DNA of 63,120 nt, filler included, from Lenisia limosa (GCA_001655205.1; 11 parts of 11 records of this genome joined end to end with filler, not necessarily neighbours in it), one strand, 5' to 3'; positions 3,001 to 61,543 are shown, counted from the first letter of the whole stretch. Notes: generated by a model from the sequence alone, not told the origin. A program made the numbers and translations.

Positions 3001-4868
3001 TTGAGAGGGGGGGGGGGGNNNNNNNNNNNNNNNNNNNNNNNNNNNNNNNNNNNNNNNNNNNNNNNNNNNNNNNNNNNNNNNNNNNNNNNNNNNNNNNNNN
3101 NNNNNNNNNNNNNNNNNNTCACGAACCAAATAATCAGAAACTCCAAACAAACAAACAAAAAAAAGCAATAACAAACACGAGCAACCAACGCTGGGGAGGG
3201 GGGTGTCAAGTGAGCGCACTGGTGGGGTTTTGGAAATTTGTTAACATTAGTACTTTGTGTTATATCATTAAAATGTATAAATGATATACAGTGCATACAA
3301 GGCGGTATGGTGATCTGTTCTCTCCAATTGACTCGATATGCTAGGCTCTGCTCATCAATTACCTCCCCCAATATCCACACCCATGCATAAGTGCTTTTTG
3401 AACAACCCGTACCTCCAATAAGTCCTTTTTGAACTTGGCATCATCGTCCTCGGAGGGGTTGTTGCACTCAGTGTAGATCTTACGGGAAACAATAATCATT
3501 CTGGGGAGGGGGGGGGGGGTNNNNNNNNNNNNNNNNNNNNNNNNNNNNNNNNNNNNNNNNNNNNNNNNNNNNNNNNNNNNNNNNNNNNNNNNNNNNNNNN
3601 NNNNNNNNNNNNNNNNNNNNNNNNNNNNNNNNNNNNNNNNNNNNNNNNNNNNNNNNNNNNNNNGATTGTTAGAATAGATTTACGATTCGGGTGAGTTGGA
3701 TTAATTCTACGTTAATATCAAAAAAGTACTAATACTGTCAAAAAATACACATATACACATGGAATATTATATAATAAAATAATATTATACGTGTATATCA
3801 TGGCTATCATATAATATATGCTATTGTTACATTGAGAATGGTGCGCAATTATTACTTTTACCCATTCTATATAGCAATGAGAAATTAAAAAATAAGGCTG
3901 CATCTGGCCGAAGCCATATCATATAAACCCAGGACGGCAACGAACCGAATGATGTACTCCAGGGCCTTGATGGAGGACCGGATGGCCTTGCCCATTTTCA
4001 TGTCGTCAGACTTGGAGAGGTAGTCCCTGGGGTGTTAATGAAGAGTTGGCAAAGTTAAGAGGCTGTGAATGAAATGAAATGCATAATTAGGGCTCTGTTC
4101 ACTTAATTTTTCAAGAATGTTATAAGACAAAATTAAAAAATAAAGTATCTCACTTCGATTCCCCCCTCCCCCACCTGATGACCGAAACGAGGTGGCGATG
4201 AGCGGTGGGGTACTTGAAGTGCTCCATGATGTAAGCGTCCAGAACTGAGCGGAAGTTGGTGAACTGCGGGGTGAGTAAAATTGGAAAATTTATTAAATAA
4301 AAAAAACCTAAATCAACTTGGGGGGAGGGGGGGGGGTAAAATTGAAAAATATATGAAACAAAAAAAAAAGGGGCTATGGAGAACCTCTGTTGGCTAGCAA
4401 CACACGAGGGTCGAAAACAACCTAACAAACAAAGCCCAGGACAGTCACTTCTGCATCCCCACATCCCATCACTGCAGAATACAAACAGCAACTCACCTTC
4501 GAGGTCTTGGAGTCTACCAAGATGTTAATAACATAGGTGATGGCGTTGAAGACGAGGAACTCAAGATTGTCAATGCCGGATTCCAGGATCGTGAAGAGAG
4601 AGTCGAAAATCTGTGCCAGGAACTAAAGTGTCAGAGGGGGGGGGACAAAATTAAAATATGAAATGTAAATTTTTGCATCTACAGACGTTTTTTTTTAAGA
4701 GCCACTCCAATTTTAGACAAGTTTGTAATTGTTTTGTTTATGAGTATTTCAGCAACCCTACAATAGTATTTAATGGTTACATCACCCCCAACTTTAATGA
4801 TATCGACAGGGGGTGCGTAGGTGAATCGGTTCAGGGTAGAGGGAAGGTTCGTTTTGGGGTCTTTCCAG
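1..4868 (-). CDS. DOCK-family (DOCK1-5-like) Rac GEF, internal multi-exon fragment
   Basis: GT-AG-bounded exons splice to WKDPKTNLPSTLNRFTYAPPVDIIK / FLAQIFDSLFTILESGIDNLEFLVFNAITYVINILVDSKTSK / FTNFRSVLDAYIMEHFKYPTAHRHLVSVIR / DYLSKSDDMKMGKAIRSSIKALEYIIRFVAVL / TCRGVLLPIVCEHVKTHLFK. This resembles the armadillo region after DHR-1 in DOCK proteins (KFLQDxLDALF...FxxFxPVLxxYIxxHF...KALEYIFKFI), recalled from memory. Confidence 0.8.
631..686 (+). repeat. (AAAAC)n microsatellite in DOCK intron
   Basis: About 11 imperfect AAAAC units read directly. Confidence 0.9.
2182..2240 (+). repeat. Dispersed repeat family C (TCTGGCCGAAGCC...), left part
   Basis: GTATCTGGCCGAAGCCATCCACACAATCACGCTGATAAGAGATATTGG. 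Related copies near 3900, 5805, 13785, 17370, 22570, 43975, 51495, 55713, 56030 and 62777. Confidence 0.8.
2425..2562 (+). repeat. About 30-bp minisatellite in DOCK intron
   Basis: ATAAACACGACTGGCAGTTATTAGAGTGAC, two near-perfect plus degenerate copies. Confidence 0.85.
2679..2774. mobile_element. MITE family A (about 95 bp, TIR GGGCTTCACTTCGGTTCGAAAAA)
   Basis: Ends GGGCTTTACTTCGGTACGAAAAA...TTTTTCGAAACAAAGTGAAGCCC are inverted repeats; TA at the left flank; non-coding. Confidence 0.8.
2812..2904. mobile_element. MITE family A, second adjacent copy
   Basis: Same internal sequence and right TIR ...CCAAAGTGAAGCCC. Confidence 0.75.
4264..4470 (-). repeat. Repeat family B forming the 3' part and acceptor of a DOCK intron
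   Basis: Minus strand reads ...CCTGGGCTTTGTTTG...GCCAACAGAG...AATTTTCCAATTTTACTCACCCCGCAG, then exon FTNFRSV. Confidence 0.8.
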
Positions 4869-4884
4869 CTGAGGGGGGGGGGGG

Positions 4885-4984
4885 NNNNNNNNNNNNNNNN
4901 NNNNNNNNNNNNNNNNNNNNNNNNNNNNTTAATTAATTAANNNNNNNNNNNNNNNNNNNNNNNNNNNNNNNNNNNNNNNNNNNN
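4885..4984. other. Artificial scaffold-joining linker, first of 10
   Basis: 44 N + TTAATTAATTAA (stops in all six frames) + 44 N. The 12-mer recurs at 4929, 12563, 15920, 22767, 27250, 41474, 44029, 46494, 56664 and 61588. Confidence 0.97.
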
Positions 4985-5150
4985 GGGGATAAAATTGGAA
5001 AATTTATGATCCAGATATGGCCCAAAATCAACTCTGCTGGCTGACAACACAAGAGGGTTAATGGTTGAGAACAACAATACAGCGTGTGACAACACACGAG
5101 TGTTGAGAACAACAAGAAATATGATAGGGGAGGGATGACCTGAAAAACAC
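4985..5150 (-). repeat. Repeat family B copy at scaffold start
   Basis: GGGGATAAAATTGGAAAATTTATGA...AAAATCAACTCTGCTGGCTGACAACAC matches the reverse complement of the family consensus. Confidence 0.7.
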
Positions 5151-5158
5151 TGCACCTA

Positions 5159-5242
5159 GGGCTTCACTTTGGTTTGAAAAAAGACTGAATTTCTCGATAA
5201 ATCCTCGAAAATTATCGGTATTGTCGAACCGGAGCGAAACAC
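5159..5242. mobile_element. MITE family A, internally deleted copy
   Basis: TA-GGGCTTCACTTTGGTTTGAAAAAAGACTGAATTTCTCGATAAATCCTCG... Confidence 0.7.
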
Positions 5243-56719: not shown

Positions 56720-56944
56720 AATTTAAAAAATATTGATTGGGTAATTGTCGGTGGAGAAAGTGGACACAACCCAAGACCAATGGATGCTGAATGGGTAATT
56801 GATATTCAAGAGCAATGTGAAAAGGCAGATGTTGCGTTTTTCTTTAAACAATGGGGCGGAAAAAATAAGAAGAAAAACGGTAGAGAATTAAATGGTCGAA
56901 CCTATGACGAAATGCCCGAAATTGAATTGCAACACAGCGTCTGA
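56720..56944 (+). CDS. DUF5131 / phage Gp37-Gp68 family protein, C-terminal fragment
   Basis: Not in the ORF track. [66 protein letters not shown]; the WVIVGGESG...FFFKQWGG motifs are characteristic. Confidence 0.88.
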
Positions 56945-56958
56945 AAGGAAAAGCCAGT

Positions 56959-57156
56959 TGCCAACAACGTATATAGCTCATAGCTAATCAGTTGCCTAAT
57001 TCAAAGTTAAGGCATATTTGGAAAGTCGCCAAATTTTTAAATTTGACGATTTCCAATAAAAAAGATAAATAGTAAAATTTAAAAATCTGGCTTGTGGCTC
57101 AACCGAAAATTAATCGCTAATTTGCACGCAACGAGCCATACACAAGACCGTTAGCC
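56959..57156 (+). repeat. attC-like site 1 (about 200 bp)
   Basis: TGCCAAC-AAC-GTATATAGCTC ... GAGCCATACAC-AAGACC-GTTAGCC. Confidence 0.8.
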
Positions 57157-57171
57157 ACAATATGACCACGA

Positions 57172-57717
57172 ATGCAAAATCTGACTAAAGAAATACAATC
57201 ATTACTCGAAACGAAAGAAACTCAAGACTTCTTAAAAGTTGCTCGTGGATTTATTGAACTGATTGAAAACAAAGAAATTAAGGAACAAGAATTTTATCCT
57301 GAAATTCACAAAAAACTGACTGAATTATATAACGCTGGACTTTCTCTAAAATCGGTTGAACTAATTCACTCAAGTGAAAAATCGAAATTTGATAACGTTT
57401 CAGAAGAGGAAATAAAAGAACGGAATGTCAATCTGATTTCCTCACTTGGAAAGGACTGTTTCTATTGGGAAGTTTTTGACCCAACTTATGAAAAGGAAAA
57501 CGAGCCGACACAAGGCTGGTTAGTTGACGATGTTGCGGACATTTATGCTGACTTAAAAGAAGAACTTTACAAAATTGACAAAATTAAAACCGATGAGGCA
57601 ATCGAAGATGGACTTTGGCAATTGAAATTCGGATTTACTTCTCATTGGGGAAATCATTGCGTGAATGCAATTCGAGCTTTACATTACATTTATTATGACG
57701 GAAAGAAAACAATGTGA
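57172..57717 (+). CDS. DUF5063-like protein (cassette ORF)
   Basis: FYWEVFDP...LVDDVADIYADLK...WQLKFGFTSHWGNHCVNAIRALH matches the DUF5063 pattern as recalled. Confidence 0.75.
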   Translation: MQNLTKEIQSLLETKETQDFLKVARGFIELIENKEIKEQEFYPEIHKKLTELYNAGLSLKSVELIHSSEKSKFDNVSEEEIKERNVNLISSLGKDCFYWEVFDPTYEKENEPTQGWLVDDVADIYADLKEELYKIDKIKTDEAIEDGLWQLKFGFTSHWGNHCVNAIRALHYIYYDGKKTM

Positions 57718-57728
57718 AAAAATACTGT

Positions 57729-57861
57729 GGCTAACAACGCATAACGGCCCAGCCCGGCTGAACCAGAAAGTTGAGAATGACAAACTTTAAACAATCAATA
57801 ACCACGGCTGACAAACCACGCCATTAAACCCGTGCCGATGCGTTATGCGAGGCCGTTAGCA
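57729..57861 (+). repeat. attC-like site 2 (about 133 bp)
   Basis: GGCTAAC-AA-CGCATAACG ... CGTTATGCG-AGGCC-GTTAGCA; perfect 9-bp inner inverted repeat. Confidence 0.88.
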
Positions 57862-57895
57862 CCAATTTTGCGACTTACGTAAGTTAATTGTAATT

Positions 57896-58840
57896 GTGTT
57901 ATTGAGTAAAACTGTCGAAGTTTGTAAAAAAATAACAGAAATGATAATAGAATATAATTTTGCAAATGATTTACTGGAAAAAATAGAGGAAGAATTAATT
58001 AGCTATGAGAGTAAAAATGGAATTCAAATTATTAAACGCTTTTCAATAAGTAAAAGTGCTAATCTTGAATGGATGAGAAAAAGTCAAGATTATAGTTTTC
58101 CAATTAACACTAGTGGTTCAACAGAAATAATTCAGATTACAAAAGAATATTATGAACTTTTAGTAAATGGATGGCAAGAAAAACATCCAGAATTAGTAAA
58201 AAAAGGAATTGTTGAGACAGTTAAATCAACAATGGAATCTGATTTTCCTGAAGAAACTATTCATTCAGCCATTTATGATAAAGTTTCAAAACTAATATAT
58301 CAATACGATGAAGTTTTAAAATGTACTAAAGAAACTAATAGACTTTTTGGAATTGAAGATGAGGAAAAAATCTTATTAATTCACCTTAATAGATATAATG
58401 AGATATTAAGTTCTGATTTTAAACAAATCGAATTTTTACACGGAATCACTTTAAATAAAAAAATTAGTGATTTAATATTAAAAATATACATTCGATTTAT
58501 CAATTTAAGGTTAAAAATGCTTANNNNNNNNNNNNNNNNNNNNNNNNNNNNNNNNNNNNNNNAAGGAAGTCAAAGAGACTTGTGCGAACTCTTTATTGAA
58601 TTACAAGAAAAGAAATGGATAGATGAATTTGAATGGGGAGAACGAAATAAAATAGCTCAATCGATTTGTAACTTATTTGATTTGACTTTAACCAAAAAAA
58701 ATAAGAATAGTAATGTCGAGAATTCTTTCTACCAAATATTAAAAGGAACTCATAATCCTAAAACCAAGAAAAGAGAATATGATGTAGTTTTAGGAAAAGA
58801 AAGTGACAGAAAATTTAATAAAATAAAAAACAGGTGCTAA
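57896..58840 (+). CDS. Hypothetical cassette protein; C-terminus weakly RteC-like
   Basis: 314-codon ORF with an internal gap; GSQRDLCELFIELQEKKWI. Stop TAA lies inside the GGTGCTAAC inverse core. Confidence 0.7.
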   Translation: MLLSKTVEVCKKITEMIIEYNFANDLLEKIEEELISYESKNGIQIIKRFSISKSANLEWMRKSQDYSFPINTSGSTEIIQITKEYYELLVNGWQEKHPELVKKGIVETVKSTMESDFPEETIHSAIYDKVSKLIYQYDEVLKCTKETNRLFGIEDEEKILLIHLNRYNEILSSDFKQIEFLHGITLNKKISDLILKIYIRFINLRLKMLXXXXXXXXXXXXXXGSQRDLCELFIELQEKKWIDEFEWGERNKIAQSICNLFDLTLTKKNKNSNVENSFYQILKGTHNPKTKKREYDVVLGKESDRKFNKIKNRC

Positions 58841-58893
58841 CAACGTATATAATCCATTGCTAGAGAGAGCCTACTTACGAAAATCCTCGCGGA
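58835..58893 (+). repeat. attC-like site 3, left arm only (right arm lost in gap)
   Basis: TGCTAAC-AAC-GTATATAATCC..., same start pattern as site 1. Confidence 0.7.
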
Positions 58894-58903
58894 NNNNNNN
58901 NNN

Positions 58904-59915
58904 CGGAATATTATTTACAATTTGCCTTTTGTTGTTTAGTTGTACTAAATCGGCAGACAATAACGACCGCAAAAGTGACCTGTCGAATTATAACTTTAAT
59001 GGACAAATAAAATCTGTAAAATCTGAACTTTTCAATCTAATTATTGAGAAAGACACTTTTAAAATCGGAGAGAAAATAAATTCACTTGCATTTGACCGAA
59101 ATTCTCTGCTCGAATTTAATGAACTCGGAAACCTGACTTCAATAAAAGAGTTTCTTTACAACGGCAAAGTAATTAAAGAAGACATCTATACTTATGATAA
59201 AAATGACCTATTAATTAAAAGAAAGGAAATTGACAATTATGGTAAAGGTTCGTTTTTAGACTTCGAATTTAAATATGATTCTAAAGACAGCTTGACTAGC
59301 GTTTTAATATCTAGCAATGGATTTAAGAGAATTCTAAAAATTGAGCGAGATAGCAATAATCGACCAATAAAAAGAGAAACTATTCAAAATGACACAGTCC
59401 AATTGACTTACAGTGTAAAATATGACCAAAACGACAATTTGATTTCTGAAAGTCAATTTAGATATAAAAACATACCAGTAAAATTAATCGAAAGAAGTTT
59501 TAACAGTCAAAACTTGAAAGAAAAGGAAAAGATTATCGAATATAGAACTTGGGATACAATCAGAGTAGAAAACGAATATCTTTATGACAATAAAAATCAA
59601 TTAGTTGTTGAGAAATTCAACGTAGAAAACGACTCAACTTTTGATGAAACAAAAAACAAATATCACAAAAACGGAAAACTAAAGGAATCAATTATAGTAA
59701 TGGGAGAAAATGAATTCGCCATTATTGAAAGAAATCTATACAATGAAAATGGGAATTTAACTGAAAAAACAGTTAAAACCAATGATGGAAAAACTAACGA
59801 TGTTTGGAGTTATGATTTTAAATATGATTTAGAAAATAATTGGATAGAAAAAATTGAATTTAAAAACAATAAACCGTTGAGAATTGTAAAACGAACAATT
59901 GAATACTATAAATAA
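58904..59915 (+). CDS. YD/RHS-repeat-like lipoprotein, start lost in gap
   Basis: Lipobox LLFSC, then repeated YxYDxxxxL units (YTYDKNDLL, FKYDSKDSL, VKYDQNDNL, YLYDNKNQL, FKYDLENNW). Confidence 0.75.
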
Positions 59916-59923
59916 AATACGTT

Positions 59924-60061
59924 GCCTAACAAAGTATAACCGCAATTACGGCGGATTCGACTACGTCCGAATCCACTCGGAATTGCTAACGCGAGTGCTT
60001 AACCGAAAATTATTAACTTTAAAACCGTNNNNNNNNNNACGGTTATACGAGACCGTTGGCA
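59924..60061 (+). repeat. attC-like site 4 (10-N gap inside)
   Basis: Canonical GCCTAAC-AAA-GTATAACCG ... CGGTTATAC-GAGACC-GTTGGCA. Confidence 0.88.
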
Positions 60062-60067
60062 ATAATT

Positions 60068-60448
60068 ATGAAAAAGACAATCTATCTAATTTTAATATTA
60101 ATGAGTTTCCAAAGTTGTAGTGGACAATTAAAATGTTCTGATTTAAAAAACGGAATATTTGAATTAAAGTCAGAAACTGGAACAACAATAATCGAAAGAA
60201 ATGGAAACACACAGATTGAAAAAAAAGACGGATTGAATTATTACTCTGATGTGGAATGGATAACGGACTGTAAATATGAACTAAAAAATCATCGGAATCA
60301 TAACGGAGAATTAGAAAAAGAAGAATTGAATAGCGTATATATTGTTGAGATAATTGAAATAATGAAAGATTCTGTGAAGATTAAGACAACTGCAAATTAT
60401 TCTGACAAAAGTCTTGAACGAACACTGCAAATAATTGAATTAAAATAA
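60068..60448 (+). CDS. Small putative lipoprotein (cassette ORF)
   Basis: MKKTIYLILILMSFQSCSGQLKCSDLKNG...; ATG lies 13 nt after the GTT core. Confidence 0.75.
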   Translation: MKKTIYLILILMSFQSCSGQLKCSDLKNGIFELKSETGTTIIERNGNTQIEKKDGLNYYSDVEWITDCKYELKNHRNHNGELEKEELNSVYIVEIIEIMKDSVKIKTTANYSDKSLERTLQIIELK

Positions 60449-60452
60449 CTAT

Positions 60453-60515
60453 TGCCAACAATGTATAACCGCAATTACGGCGGATTCGACTACGTCCGAA
60501 TCCACTCGGAATTGC
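60453..60515 (+). repeat. attC-like site 5, left arm
   Basis: TGCCAAC-AAT-GTATAACCGCAATTACGGCGGATTCGACTACGTCCGAATCC..., identical to the left arm of site 4 up to the gap. Confidence 0.85.
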
Positions 60516-60603
60516 NNNNNNNNNNNNNNNNNNNNNNNNNNNNNNNNNNNNNNNNNNNNNNNNNNNNNNNNNNNNNNNNNNNNNNNNNNNNNNNNNNNNN
60601 NNN

Positions 60604-61543
60604 TCGGAAAATGAATTTCTATTCTACAACTTTGTGGAATTGACTTTTGCACCTCATTTGCAAAAATGGTACGAGAAAGCCAAAGCAAACGGAATTCAAT
60701 TTAAACCGCAATACGAACAAGCAATTAAACAAAAAGTTTCAACATCTGAATTTAAAAATCCTCACAGTTTTCCAGAATATTTCGACAGTAAATTTGACCA
60801 TATTGTAATTGACTTTGAAACAGCAAACCAAAACCGAGTTAGTGCTTGTGCTTTAGGCTTGGTTTTCATAAAAAATGACAGAATAGCTTATCAAACAAGT
60901 TTTCACATCAAACCGCCAGAAACCGAAAAATTCTCAAGCAGAAATATTGGAATTCACGGAATTACAGCCGAAGATGTAGATTATGCAATGACTTTCGATG
61001 AACTTTGGGAATTTGAACTTTCAAAATATTTTAATCAAAACTTAATTGTGTTCCATAACGCAAGTATGGATTTGAGTGTTTTAAAAAACCTCTTTGAACA
61101 CTATTCAATTTCAGATTTCAATATTAACTACTTGGACACAATGCAACTTGCGGAGAAAACAGGAAATTCAAAAAAGTTAGCTGAACTCGCAGAAAAATTT
61201 GACATTGAATATATTGACAAACATAATCCTGAACAAGATGCAAAAGTTTGTGCTTATGTATTTGGAGAACTTGCAGAACTTTATCCCGATTATGAAAGTT
61301 TAATAAAAACTTTGAGTTTCGGAGAAATTCAAGAAAAAAGAATTCGACAAAAAGAAACAGCCGAAATTAAAAATCAAAATCTTGATTATGTTCAAGCGTA
61401 TTCTCTAAAAGACGGAGAACTCGAAAAAATTGAGATTAAGAACAAAGGATTTATTTTTACTGGAGAAATAACGACAGACAGAAGTACAGCGAAAAAATTT
61501 ATCGAACAAAATGGCGGAATAATAAAATCTGGAATTACGAGCA
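60604..61543 (+). CDS. DEDDh 3'-5' exonuclease (Pol III epsilon-like) with C-terminal BRCT domain, both ends truncated
   Basis: VIDFETAN, VFHNASMD, YLDTMQLA, HNPEQDA; BRCT-like KNKGFIFTGEI...IEQNGGIIKSGIT. The frame is open from the gap at 60604. Confidence 0.85.

Follow-up and report, generated by a model that had tools for sequence, protein, structure and literature searches.

Positions 56720-61543 of the analysed window, a 63,120-nucleotide stretch of DNA (filler included) joined from parts of 11 records of the Lenisia limosa assembly GCA_001655205.1, probably constitute the internal part of a chromosomal array of mobile gene cassettes, which is integron-like yet non-classical and would be served by an Xer-like recombinase. 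The region consists of seven same-strand reading frames with imperfect palindromes between them. A cassette holds one gene, sometimes two or more, and runs from a 5'-terminal GTT to a 3'-terminal AAC; its two ends are complementary over their outer 14 nt. An integron-like cassette array had been proposed in a first-pass annotation of the sequence, and this proposal is supported by the sites detected with a covariance model (CM), by the cassette-specific pairing of the ends and by the varied contexts of the cassettes. Arrays in relatives begin just downstream of a conserved tyrosine recombinase gene.

Cassette-specific pairing of the ends

Five left-hand ends (...YAAC-AAYG) and three right-hand ends (...CCGTTRGC) are found in positions 56720-61543, and the remaining two right-hand ends are swallowed by assembly gaps. 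The three end pairings noted beforehand are all present, joining 57150 with 57722 (13/14), 57855 with 58833 (9/9) and 60055 with 60447 (12/13). It had also been noted that a GTT flank pairs less well with the left end of its own palindrome than with the far end of its own cassette, and the own-cassette end was the best of five in 3/3 cases. The uninterrupted runs with the own end are 10, 9 and 10 nt long, while every other combination of the five left-hand ends in the stretch gave at most 6.

The same behaviour was displayed by related loci, in which pairing of at least 11/14 within the own cassette was seen for 156 of 286 consecutive site pairs (54.5%); the corresponding shares were 3.6% when a palindrome's two ends were compared with each other and 1.8% when pairs were drawn at random. 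The distribution of own-end matches peaks at 13/14, and 14/14 was never attained. Own-end pairing is confirmed as a real observation, far beyond chance. The pairing had been described as longer than the usual 7-bp R box, and the stem proved to be exactly 14 bp, mostly mismatched from position 15 onwards. Position 11 is mismatched in 155/156 cassettes, 152 of which carry A opposite C on the coding strand, and this reads as a G·T wobble on the opposite strand. Positions 4-10 vary between cassettes, with position 4 alone keeping its purine or pyrimidine character (R/Y) and positions 5-7 free, so the stem is kept by complementarity and not by sequence. Own-end complementarity over a 7-bp core is textbook integron biology; the new element is the 14-bp extent of the pairing together with its fixed wobble.

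Hairpin sites and the folding strand

Sites were called with a constrained search demanding AAC[AC], an L box of 9 nt and a right spacer exceeding the left one by 3 nt, with the background measured. At this offset of +3 the caller returned 453 calls, compared with 108-293 at other offsets or on shuffled sequence, and it made 0 calls on the opposite strand of L001, a gap-free metagenome contig that covers the stretch (described below). A generic structure-based caller, which on L001 gave 40 calls on one strand and 42 on the other, was dropped as far too permissive in this AT-rich DNA.

AAC and GTT are invariant in the sites. The span from AAC to GTT has a median of 125 nt (5-75% range 123-126) with a minor class of 189-199 nt, corresponding to a hairpin interior between cassettes of ~118 nt, or ~185 nt in the minor class. 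The spacers measure 3-4 nt on the left and 6-7 nt on the right, placing the surplus bases on the AAC arm of the folding strand, and the consensus fold contains no bulge on the arm opposite AAC. Among 231 high-confidence sites, the L-box positions that are not Watson-Crick pairs were, on the coding strand, A·C in 177 instances and G·T in 3.

An alignment of 70 non-redundant sites, written as non-coding strands, was used to define the fold, and the CM was built from these 70 related sites. The consensus inner stem is 16 bp long, with compensatory changes in 13/16 pairs; 97.6% of its cells pair, and 500/500 shuffles and all slid versions scored far lower. Two G·T wobbles are conserved in the inner stem (57/70 and 69/70 sites), and the variants at these columns are other standard pairs. 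With DNA energy parameters, the non-coding strand was the more stable one for 127/137 sites as they lie in the array and for 136/137 when rebuilt as a circular cassette. The circularised sites reached -29.5 kcal/mol on the non-coding and -25.5 kcal/mol on the coding strand, with own-end joining adding 6.4 kcal/mol. An example cassette of L001 folds in circular form into a single uninterrupted hairpin whose AAC arm has 3 surplus nt.

The 15 standard-length sites of L001 scored 84-105 bits with the CM, all on the non-coding strand, and the coding strand did not exceed 18 bits. In positions 56720-61543, the CM recognised two complete sites and three partial or atypical ones. The expectation of attC-like sites was borne out by both complete standard-length sites (sites 2 and 4 of Table 1), found at E values of 1.6e-8 and 7.6e-10. 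An Rfam scan of the same positions returned no attC family; the only match was Ref70 at chance level (E 0.09, 27 bits vs a cut-off of 115). Folding of the bottom strands, on which the fate of the proposal had been staked beforehand, was observed: the bottom strand was the more stable fold in 136/137 circularised sites, and the CM likewise places the sites on the non-coding strand. These data showed that the non-coding strand is the strand selected to fold.

Crossover point and mobility of the cassettes

The cassettes occur in varied contexts and break at GTT. The cassette encoding a DUF5063 protein follows three different upstream neighbours (in L001; in loci L002, L005, L007 and L008; and in L004 and L006), and its identity begins exactly at GTTAGCC in all three contexts, in agreement with the earlier reading of own-end pairing as the hallmark of cassettes inserted as circles at GTT. 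Seven cassette pairs are common to different loci, six of them between genomes of different species. The upstream interior is conserved in 0/7 of these pairs and the downstream interior in 4/7, against a random-interior baseline of 6%. Considering this conservation, the contexts of the DUF5063 cassette and the start of the first cassette beside the recombinase gene, the main exchange point is placed at the border between interior and GTT, as in classical integrons. Crossover on the AAC side as the main mode, with the interior moving together with the downstream gene, was rejected on the grounds that the upstream interior was kept in none of the seven pairs and that no full interior stands before cassette 1.

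Two side observations concern the contents of related arrays. At L129 17369-21031, two strong sites surround 3.4 kb of DNA in which four housekeeping-like genes lie (cNMP-binding, YceI, GTP cyclohydrolase II and a glutamate-synthase domain); the unit may represent a large multi-gene cassette. In addition, IS110-family transposase genes lie in or beside four arrays (L023, L077, L085 and L104; e.g. L085 5287-6423). Classical integrons attract IS1111-attC elements, which belong to the same superfamily as the IS110 family.

The properties of the sites also bear on the alternative of a double-stranded, Xer/dif-module-like system comparable to pdif modules, in which a duplex L' arm, a 6-7-bp spacer and a GTT arm would form the site and the palindromes would be inverted duplex sites. 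We regard it as improbable. The right-hand spacer of 6-7 nt does have the length of an Xer central region (the left one has 3-4 nt) and the recombinase of related arrays is Xer-like, but the 7 nt beside GTT differ in every cassette, which makes a sequence-specific duplex arm unlikely, and the stem varies in sequence while complementarity is kept in 13/16 pairs. Departures from Watson-Crick pairing are nearly always of the kind that creates G·T on one given strand (177 vs 3 in the L box; 152/155 at position 11), and standard pairs occur as variants of the wobble columns, all of which would be unexpected for duplex sites. An occasional exchange on the AAC side, as described below, would be more readily envisaged if both sides carried duplex sites.

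An Xer-like recombinase beside related arrays

No integrase was in view in the first-pass annotation, and none was found in positions 56720-61543 or on L001. Clustering of all open reading frames (ORFs) of the related loci showed that the sole widely conserved neighbour of the arrays is a tyrosine recombinase, whose cluster is present in 12 loci. Nine of the ten cluster members that were scanned are of the XerA/IntI-like type, with the domains Phage_integrase and SAM_4. The gene lies upstream of the array and co-directional with it in 7/10 loci, and in seven loci cassette 1 starts 40-100 nt past the recombinase stop codon. The GTT flank of cassette 1 is complementary to the far end of this cassette at 11-13 of 13-14 positions. 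No full interior precedes this cassette; in 5/7 junctions, a palindrome of 20-27 nt (perfect in four) is followed by 4-6 nt and GTT. In L129, sites continue for at least 10 kb after the recombinase gene.

The family is large, with 376 amino acids (aa) and 64-90% identity across many genera, and the catalytic residues R235, K260/K263, H324, R327, H350 and Y359 are invariant in 42 homologues. The recombinase passes the NCBIfam model NF040815 ('XerA / integron integrase'), and its NCBI name is equally ambiguous ('site-specific tyrosine recombinase/integron integrase'). None of the ten scanned recombinases reached the cut-off of 265 of TIGR02249 (integron integrase); the nine XerA/IntI-like ones scored 188-215 bits, in two stretches omitting model positions ~180-240. 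In place of residues 180-241 of V. cholerae IntI (2A3V; 62 residues) the recombinase has 19 residues, and its alignment to archaeal XerA is continuous. In line with PMC9668308 and PMC4889954, we take IntI residues 180-241 to be the region of the IntI-specific insertion. The predicted structure (pLDDT 81) has XerA and IntI as its equally nearest solved structures. The suggestion that the recombinase might not be a classic IntI is thus upheld in related loci, where the adjoining enzyme is devoid of the IntI-specific insertion.

Residues 5-77 form an extra conserved N-terminal alpha/beta domain with the order b-b-a-b-b-a-b (L011 3642-4769 (-)), which matched no Pfam family. The N-terminal DNA-structure-recognition domains of UvsW (T4) and of an archaeal XPB helicase gave fold matches of Z 6.4-6.8, below trust level, and serve as a lead only.

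Other observations were made around the recombinase gene. In L129 and in L130 (9547-10000), a divergent, conserved gene encoding a 127-aa Cys-rich protein (CxxC...CxxxC), for which no Pfam family was matched, is located 70 nt upstream of the recombinase, and the spacer between the two contains a conserved palindrome (GAATATTATACGTATAATATACGTATAATATTC in L129). The protein and the palindrome may be a regulator and its operator. SOS control of the recombinase was dismissed, the upstream palindrome being unlike Bacteroidetes LexA motifs. Moreover, L100 6063-6878 (-) and L111 4682-5497 (-) contain an identical 272-aa ORF (from the first ATG) matching the recombinase core, which is divergent from the adjoining sites, corresponding to the classical orientation.

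These features can be set against a second alternative, according to which the stretch is an ordinary integron fragment (CALIN) with divergent classical attC sites and a distant classical IntI, the neighbouring Xer-like enzyme being unrelated. Classical integrons likewise show AAC/GTT ends, folding of the bottom strand, complementarity between a cassette's own ends and arrays confined to one strand, and CALINs far from any integrase are common (PMC9024848). An IntI could moreover lie farther off than the inspected 8-21 kb around each array. However, the arrays of seven independent loci begin 40-100 nt past the stop codon of the Xer-like gene with a platform-specific hairpin replacing the full site, 0/10 array-adjacent recombinases reach the TIGR02249 cut-off, and nine skip the IntI-specific region. 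The arm on which IntI would bind has no extrahelical bases, the spacers of 3-4 vs 6-7 nt differ from the canonical 5-6 nt (PMC5027507), and surveys report essentially no integrons in the phylum (PMC9024848; 10.1101/2024.07.02.601686), leaving this explanation quite unlikely. Immobile or selfish intergenic repeats (REP/BIME-like, MITE-like or terminators) without cassette recombination would account for imperfect intergenic palindromes of ~125 nt that are highly similar across genomes, and such elements are numerous in Bacteroidota according to a MITE survey (PMC11602168), but this explanation is largely refuted by the context comparisons and hardly credible, since one and the same gene has different neighbours in different loci, the breaks coinciding exactly with GTT and AAC, end pairing is cassette-specific, arrays are anchored at the recombinase gene, and all sites of an array share one orientation (0 opposite-strand calls on L001).

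Proposed mechanism and points against it

For the integron-like array favoured here, the following route is suggested by the sites and by the enzyme of related loci. The recombinase would cut the folded non-coding strand in the 5'-AAC-3' triplet, the complement of GTT, and carry out a single-strand exchange with another folded site in the manner of IntI, whereby the cassette would be released as a circle. In the circle, the cassette's own ends would form the 14-bp stem with its G·T wobble at position 11, beyond which the AAC arm would carry 3 extra nt as a bulge or asymmetric loop before the 16-bp stem with two more G·T pairs begins. The circle would re-insert at another site or at the short hairpin beside the recombinase gene. 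The putative enzyme is the 376-aa Xer/IntI-like protein with its extra N-terminal domain, which would work without the IntI insertion that binds extrahelical bases, and the choice of strand and arm would rest on the wobbles and the asymmetric loop.

Several points weigh against this account. First, two independent cassette pairs (99.7% and 98.7% identical) have unrelated downstream interiors, with identity ending exactly at AAC. Interior swaps at AAC are not predicted by a strictly one-sided, one-strand exchange; they indicate that the AAC/interior border recombines too, less often than the other border, and gene and hairpin interior do not always move together. The obvious candidate explanation for exchange at the AAC border would be that the other strand recombines now and then. 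Second, the two ends of one palindrome pair over 4 bp only within the array, and excision from the array would need a much poorer R box than that of a classical attC. Third, surplus unpaired bases on the AAC arm oppose the canonical rule (PMC5027507), and the analogy to IntI chemistry may fail in detail. Fourth, as the recombinase is absent from the stretch and from L001, its link to this array is drawn from relatives; adjacency is the sole tie between the recombinase and the sites, and its role is a predicted one. In addition, the related loci were found through one interior family, so the family frequencies are biased.

We lean towards the view that marine Flavobacteriaceae and other Bacteroidota possess an integron-like lineage of their own, in which an Xer-like enzyme that either never acquired or lost the IntI insertion would read hairpins by an asymmetric loop and fixed G·T pairs. 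A hairpin would serve as the platform, and both borders of the interior would recombine, with genes and interiors assorting separately.

Distribution and previous descriptions

More than 120 genome contigs contain an exact copy of a 24-mer of the commonest interior. They come from, among others, Psychroflexus, Tenacibaculum, Winogradskyella, Polaribacter, Leeuwenhoekiella, Flagellimonas, numerous further Flavobacteriaceae, a Lewinellaceae bacterium and Algoriphagus. Many of these loci are same-strand arrays. Carriage by phages was considered and set aside, as the 24-mer occurred in 0 viral contigs. The suspected origin from Bacteroidota is upheld by a T9SS sorting domain, a Bacteroidota marker, in the first gene of L001 and by the presence of the site family in Flavobacteriaceae, Lewinellaceae and Algoriphagus.

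IntegronFinder 2.0 names one complete integron in Bacteroidetes proper, in Salinibacter ruber (PMC9024848), and a 2024 preprint lists Bacteroidota among the clades previously without integrons (10.1101/2024.07.02.601686). No description of such arrays was found in the open-access literature, including Cury et al. 2016 and the supplements of IntegronFinder 2.0.

Features of the stretch and its gap-free counterpart

The true contents of the assembly gaps were read from L001, a gap-free 13,885-bp metagenome contig (ENA ERZ3820729, NODE_1109) retrieved by exact look-up of the DUF5063 protein. L001 spans all four ungapped blocks of positions 56720-61543, three of which are identical and the longest 99.4% identical (BLAST). 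It is an array over its whole length, with two long sites besides the 15 of standard length, in a single orientation. Three of the four gaps fall in inter-cassette sites, two of them in copies of one repeated interior family, and that at 58524-58562 is intragenic. Sites 4 and 5 have a 59-nt interior in common (98% identical, a direct repeat); together with the gaps within sites, this suggests that the repeats broke the assembly there. Comparison with L001 further identified the listed reading frames crossing the gaps 58894-58903 and 60516-60603 as artefacts, including the ORF 58857..59915, which runs through the former gap, where the true ATG of the next gene is located. The features are collected in Table 1.

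Table 1. Sites, cassettes and assembly gaps in positions 56720-61543, with cassette pairs compared between related loci
Feature	Position	Strand	Details
DUF5131 gene, 3' end (second gene of a two-gene cassette)	56720..56944	+	Pfam DUF5131 E 5e-27; 5' part beyond the edge
Site 1, long class	56959..57156	-	AAC 56963-56965, GTT 57150-57152, span 190 nt; site caller, L001 5255/5442
Cassette A	57150..57735	+	GTTAGCCACAATAT ... DUF5063 gene 57172-57717 ... ATACTGTGGCTAAC; Pfam DUF5063 E 6e-42
Site 2	57729..57861	-	AAC 57733-57735, GTT 57855-57857; CM 43.9 bits, E 1.6e-8
Cassette B	57855..58841	+	One gene, ATG 57941, stop 58838-58840; gap 58524-58562 inside
Gap, 39 N	58524-58562		True length 60 nt; inside one gene, in frame, 306 aa
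Site 3, left part	58835..58893	-	AAC 58839-58841; remainder and GTT in gap 58894-58903
Gap, 10 N	58894-58903		True length 91 nt; remainder of site 3, its GTT, ATG of the RHS-repeat lipoprotein gene
Cassette C	58904..59930	+	RHS-repeat lipoprotein gene, stop 59915, ends ...TACGTTGCCTAAC; Pfam RHS_repeat E 2e-5
Site 4	59924..60061	-	AAC 59928-59930, GTT 60055-60057; CM 50.1 bits, E 7.6e-10 despite Ns
Gap, 10 N	60029-60038		True length 5 nt; part of hairpin loop
Cassette D	60055..60459	+	GTTGGCAATAATT ... 126-aa lipoprotein gene 60068-60448 ... AACTATTGCCAAC
Site 5, left part	60453..60515	-	AAC 60457-60459; remainder in gap 60516-60603
Gap, 88 N	60516-60603		True length 184 nt; remainder of site 5 and first ~30 exonuclease codons
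Cassette E	60604..61543	+	DEDDh exonuclease gene; 5' end in gap, 3' end beyond the edge
Near-identical cassettes with unrelated downstream interiors	L001 5442-6027 vs L002 3518-4103; L047 779-1302 (-) vs L103 7232-7755 (-)

The two-gene cassette at the left edge is complete on L001 (3388-4509 and 4511-5236, together 3388-5236). Its first gene (L001 3388-4509), encoding a GMT-wHTH-like protein, matches PADLOC PDC-M30A over nearly its full length (E 5e-146), and the DUF5131 gene (4511-5236) matches PDC-M30B, and equally PDC-M41B, again near full length (E 2e-133). In PADLOC, PDC-M30 is a candidate phage-defence system and PDC-M41 a candidate defence system. Site 1, which follows, contains nested strong hairpins in its interior and two A·C positions on the coding strand of its L box, corresponding to G·T on the folding strand. 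It gives partial CM matches only, because the model describes the 125-nt class. A twin with 92% identity is situated at the far end of L001 (13683-13884), after a different cassette.

Site 2 belongs to an outlier family with a GC-rich L box, and its non-coding strand folds with an energy of -22.0 kcal/mol (coding strand -17.9 kcal/mol) into an R box, an internal loop and an L stem. The gene of cassette B is uninterrupted on L001 (6233-7153) and encodes 306 aa, with no Pfam family matched by its product; its stop codon falls within the left end of site 3. A stop codon inside the left end of a site was seen in some cassettes (58838-58841; L001 10168-10185), and the last codons of the exonuclease gene reach into the L box, so that the site constrains the C-terminus of the protein. 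Site 3 is complete at L001 7148-7278 (CM 99.9 bits). The first 14 nt of the cassette C gene and the GTT end of this cassette are hidden in the gap 58894-58903; on L001 (7284-8309), the gene encodes 341 aa starting with MKKTF....

Site 4 represents the widespread interior family and has a complete copy at L001 8318-8450 (CM 90.3 bits), and site 5 is complete at L001 8842-8975 (CM 93.9 bits). The lipoprotein of cassette D matched no Pfam family. The gene of cassette E, with matches to Pfam RNase_T (E 1.5e-18) and PADLOC DEDDh (E 1e-19), encodes 390 aa on L001 (9013-10185), comprising RNase_T and a C-terminal BRCT domain.

Implications

If this interpretation is true, the system would be an independent invention of the integron or a missing link to it, within a phylum described as free of integrons. 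A widespread cassette system with an Xer-like enzyme would show that hairpin-based capture is possible without the IntI domain, and it would provide a concrete intermediate or parallel for the origin of integrons from Xer recombinases. Cassette-specific ends of 14 bp and interiors that can be separated from their genes could shed light on how cassettes and sites are made. The cassettes of abundant marine polysaccharide degraders would amount to a large and unexplored pool that includes candidate phage-defence genes (PDC-M30). With the integron finders now in use, these elements are probably missed or annotated only as unexplained repeats, and a definition of integrons by the IntI-specific domain may miss this system.

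Comparison with known systems

The array closely resembles sedentary chromosomal integrons and CALINs, such as the V. cholerae superintegron with its VCR sites. Both consist of same-strand, mostly single short genes between AAC...GTT palindromes, of which the non-coding strand folds; crossover occurs at GTT, and the cassette carries the partner of its own far end. Both also have few, homogeneous interior families that break short-read assemblies, as well as defence-type cassettes (here PDC-M30). The array thus has AAC...GTT bottom-strand hairpins, crossover complementarity and mobile cassettes in common with integrons, and it departs from them in three respects, namely the IntI domain, the geometry of the sites and the platform site. 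With regard to the first, an IntI-specific additional domain near patch III is reportedly the integron criterion of Messier and Roy (2001), and IntegronFinder is said to apply it likewise; the recombinase described here is devoid of this insertion and carries an extra N-terminal domain.

With regard to geometry, canonical attC sites as described by Nivina et al. 2016 (PMC5027507) combine the R boxes RYYYAAC/GTTRRRY with spacers measuring 5-6 nt on either arm, and their extrahelical bases, to which IntI binds, lie on the arm facing the AAC triplet of the strand that recombines. In contrast to this 7-bp R box, the R stem here is 14 bp long and cassette-specific with a fixed G·T, and the spacers of 3-4 vs 6-7 nt place the surplus on the AAC arm, leaving the opposite arm without extrahelical bases. 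The platform is a short hairpin instead of a duplex attI beside a divergent intI, and the recombinase gene is co-directional with the cassettes. Furthermore, the interior families are common to several genera, even classes. The inverted-integrase integrons of Treponema and others (PMC4889954) likewise have the integrase gene upstream of the cassettes in the same orientation, yet their integrases possess the IntI-specific region and are called IntI by IntegronFinder, whereas the recombinases here stay below the integron-integrase cut-off.

Among systems based on Xer, archaeal XerA is the best match in sequence and fold. By analogy with CTX phage integration at dif, in which Xer recombination acts on a folded single strand, an Xer-type enzyme without the IntI insertion could act on a one-strand hairpin by a single strand exchange. 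In contrast to CTX/dif, the loci here display neither a dif-like 11-6-11 site nor a phage genome, and they comprise many-cassette arrays with a dedicated platform. The pdif modules of Acinetobacter plasmids are recombined by host XerC/XerD at conserved 28-bp duplex sites consisting of two 11-bp arms around a 6-bp centre, and they resemble the present cassettes as gene modules within inverted recombination sites that occur in varied contexts. Unlike in pdif modules, the ends here are cassette-specific, a folded single strand is indicated as the substrate, and the recombinase is encoded by a dedicated gene at the end of the array.

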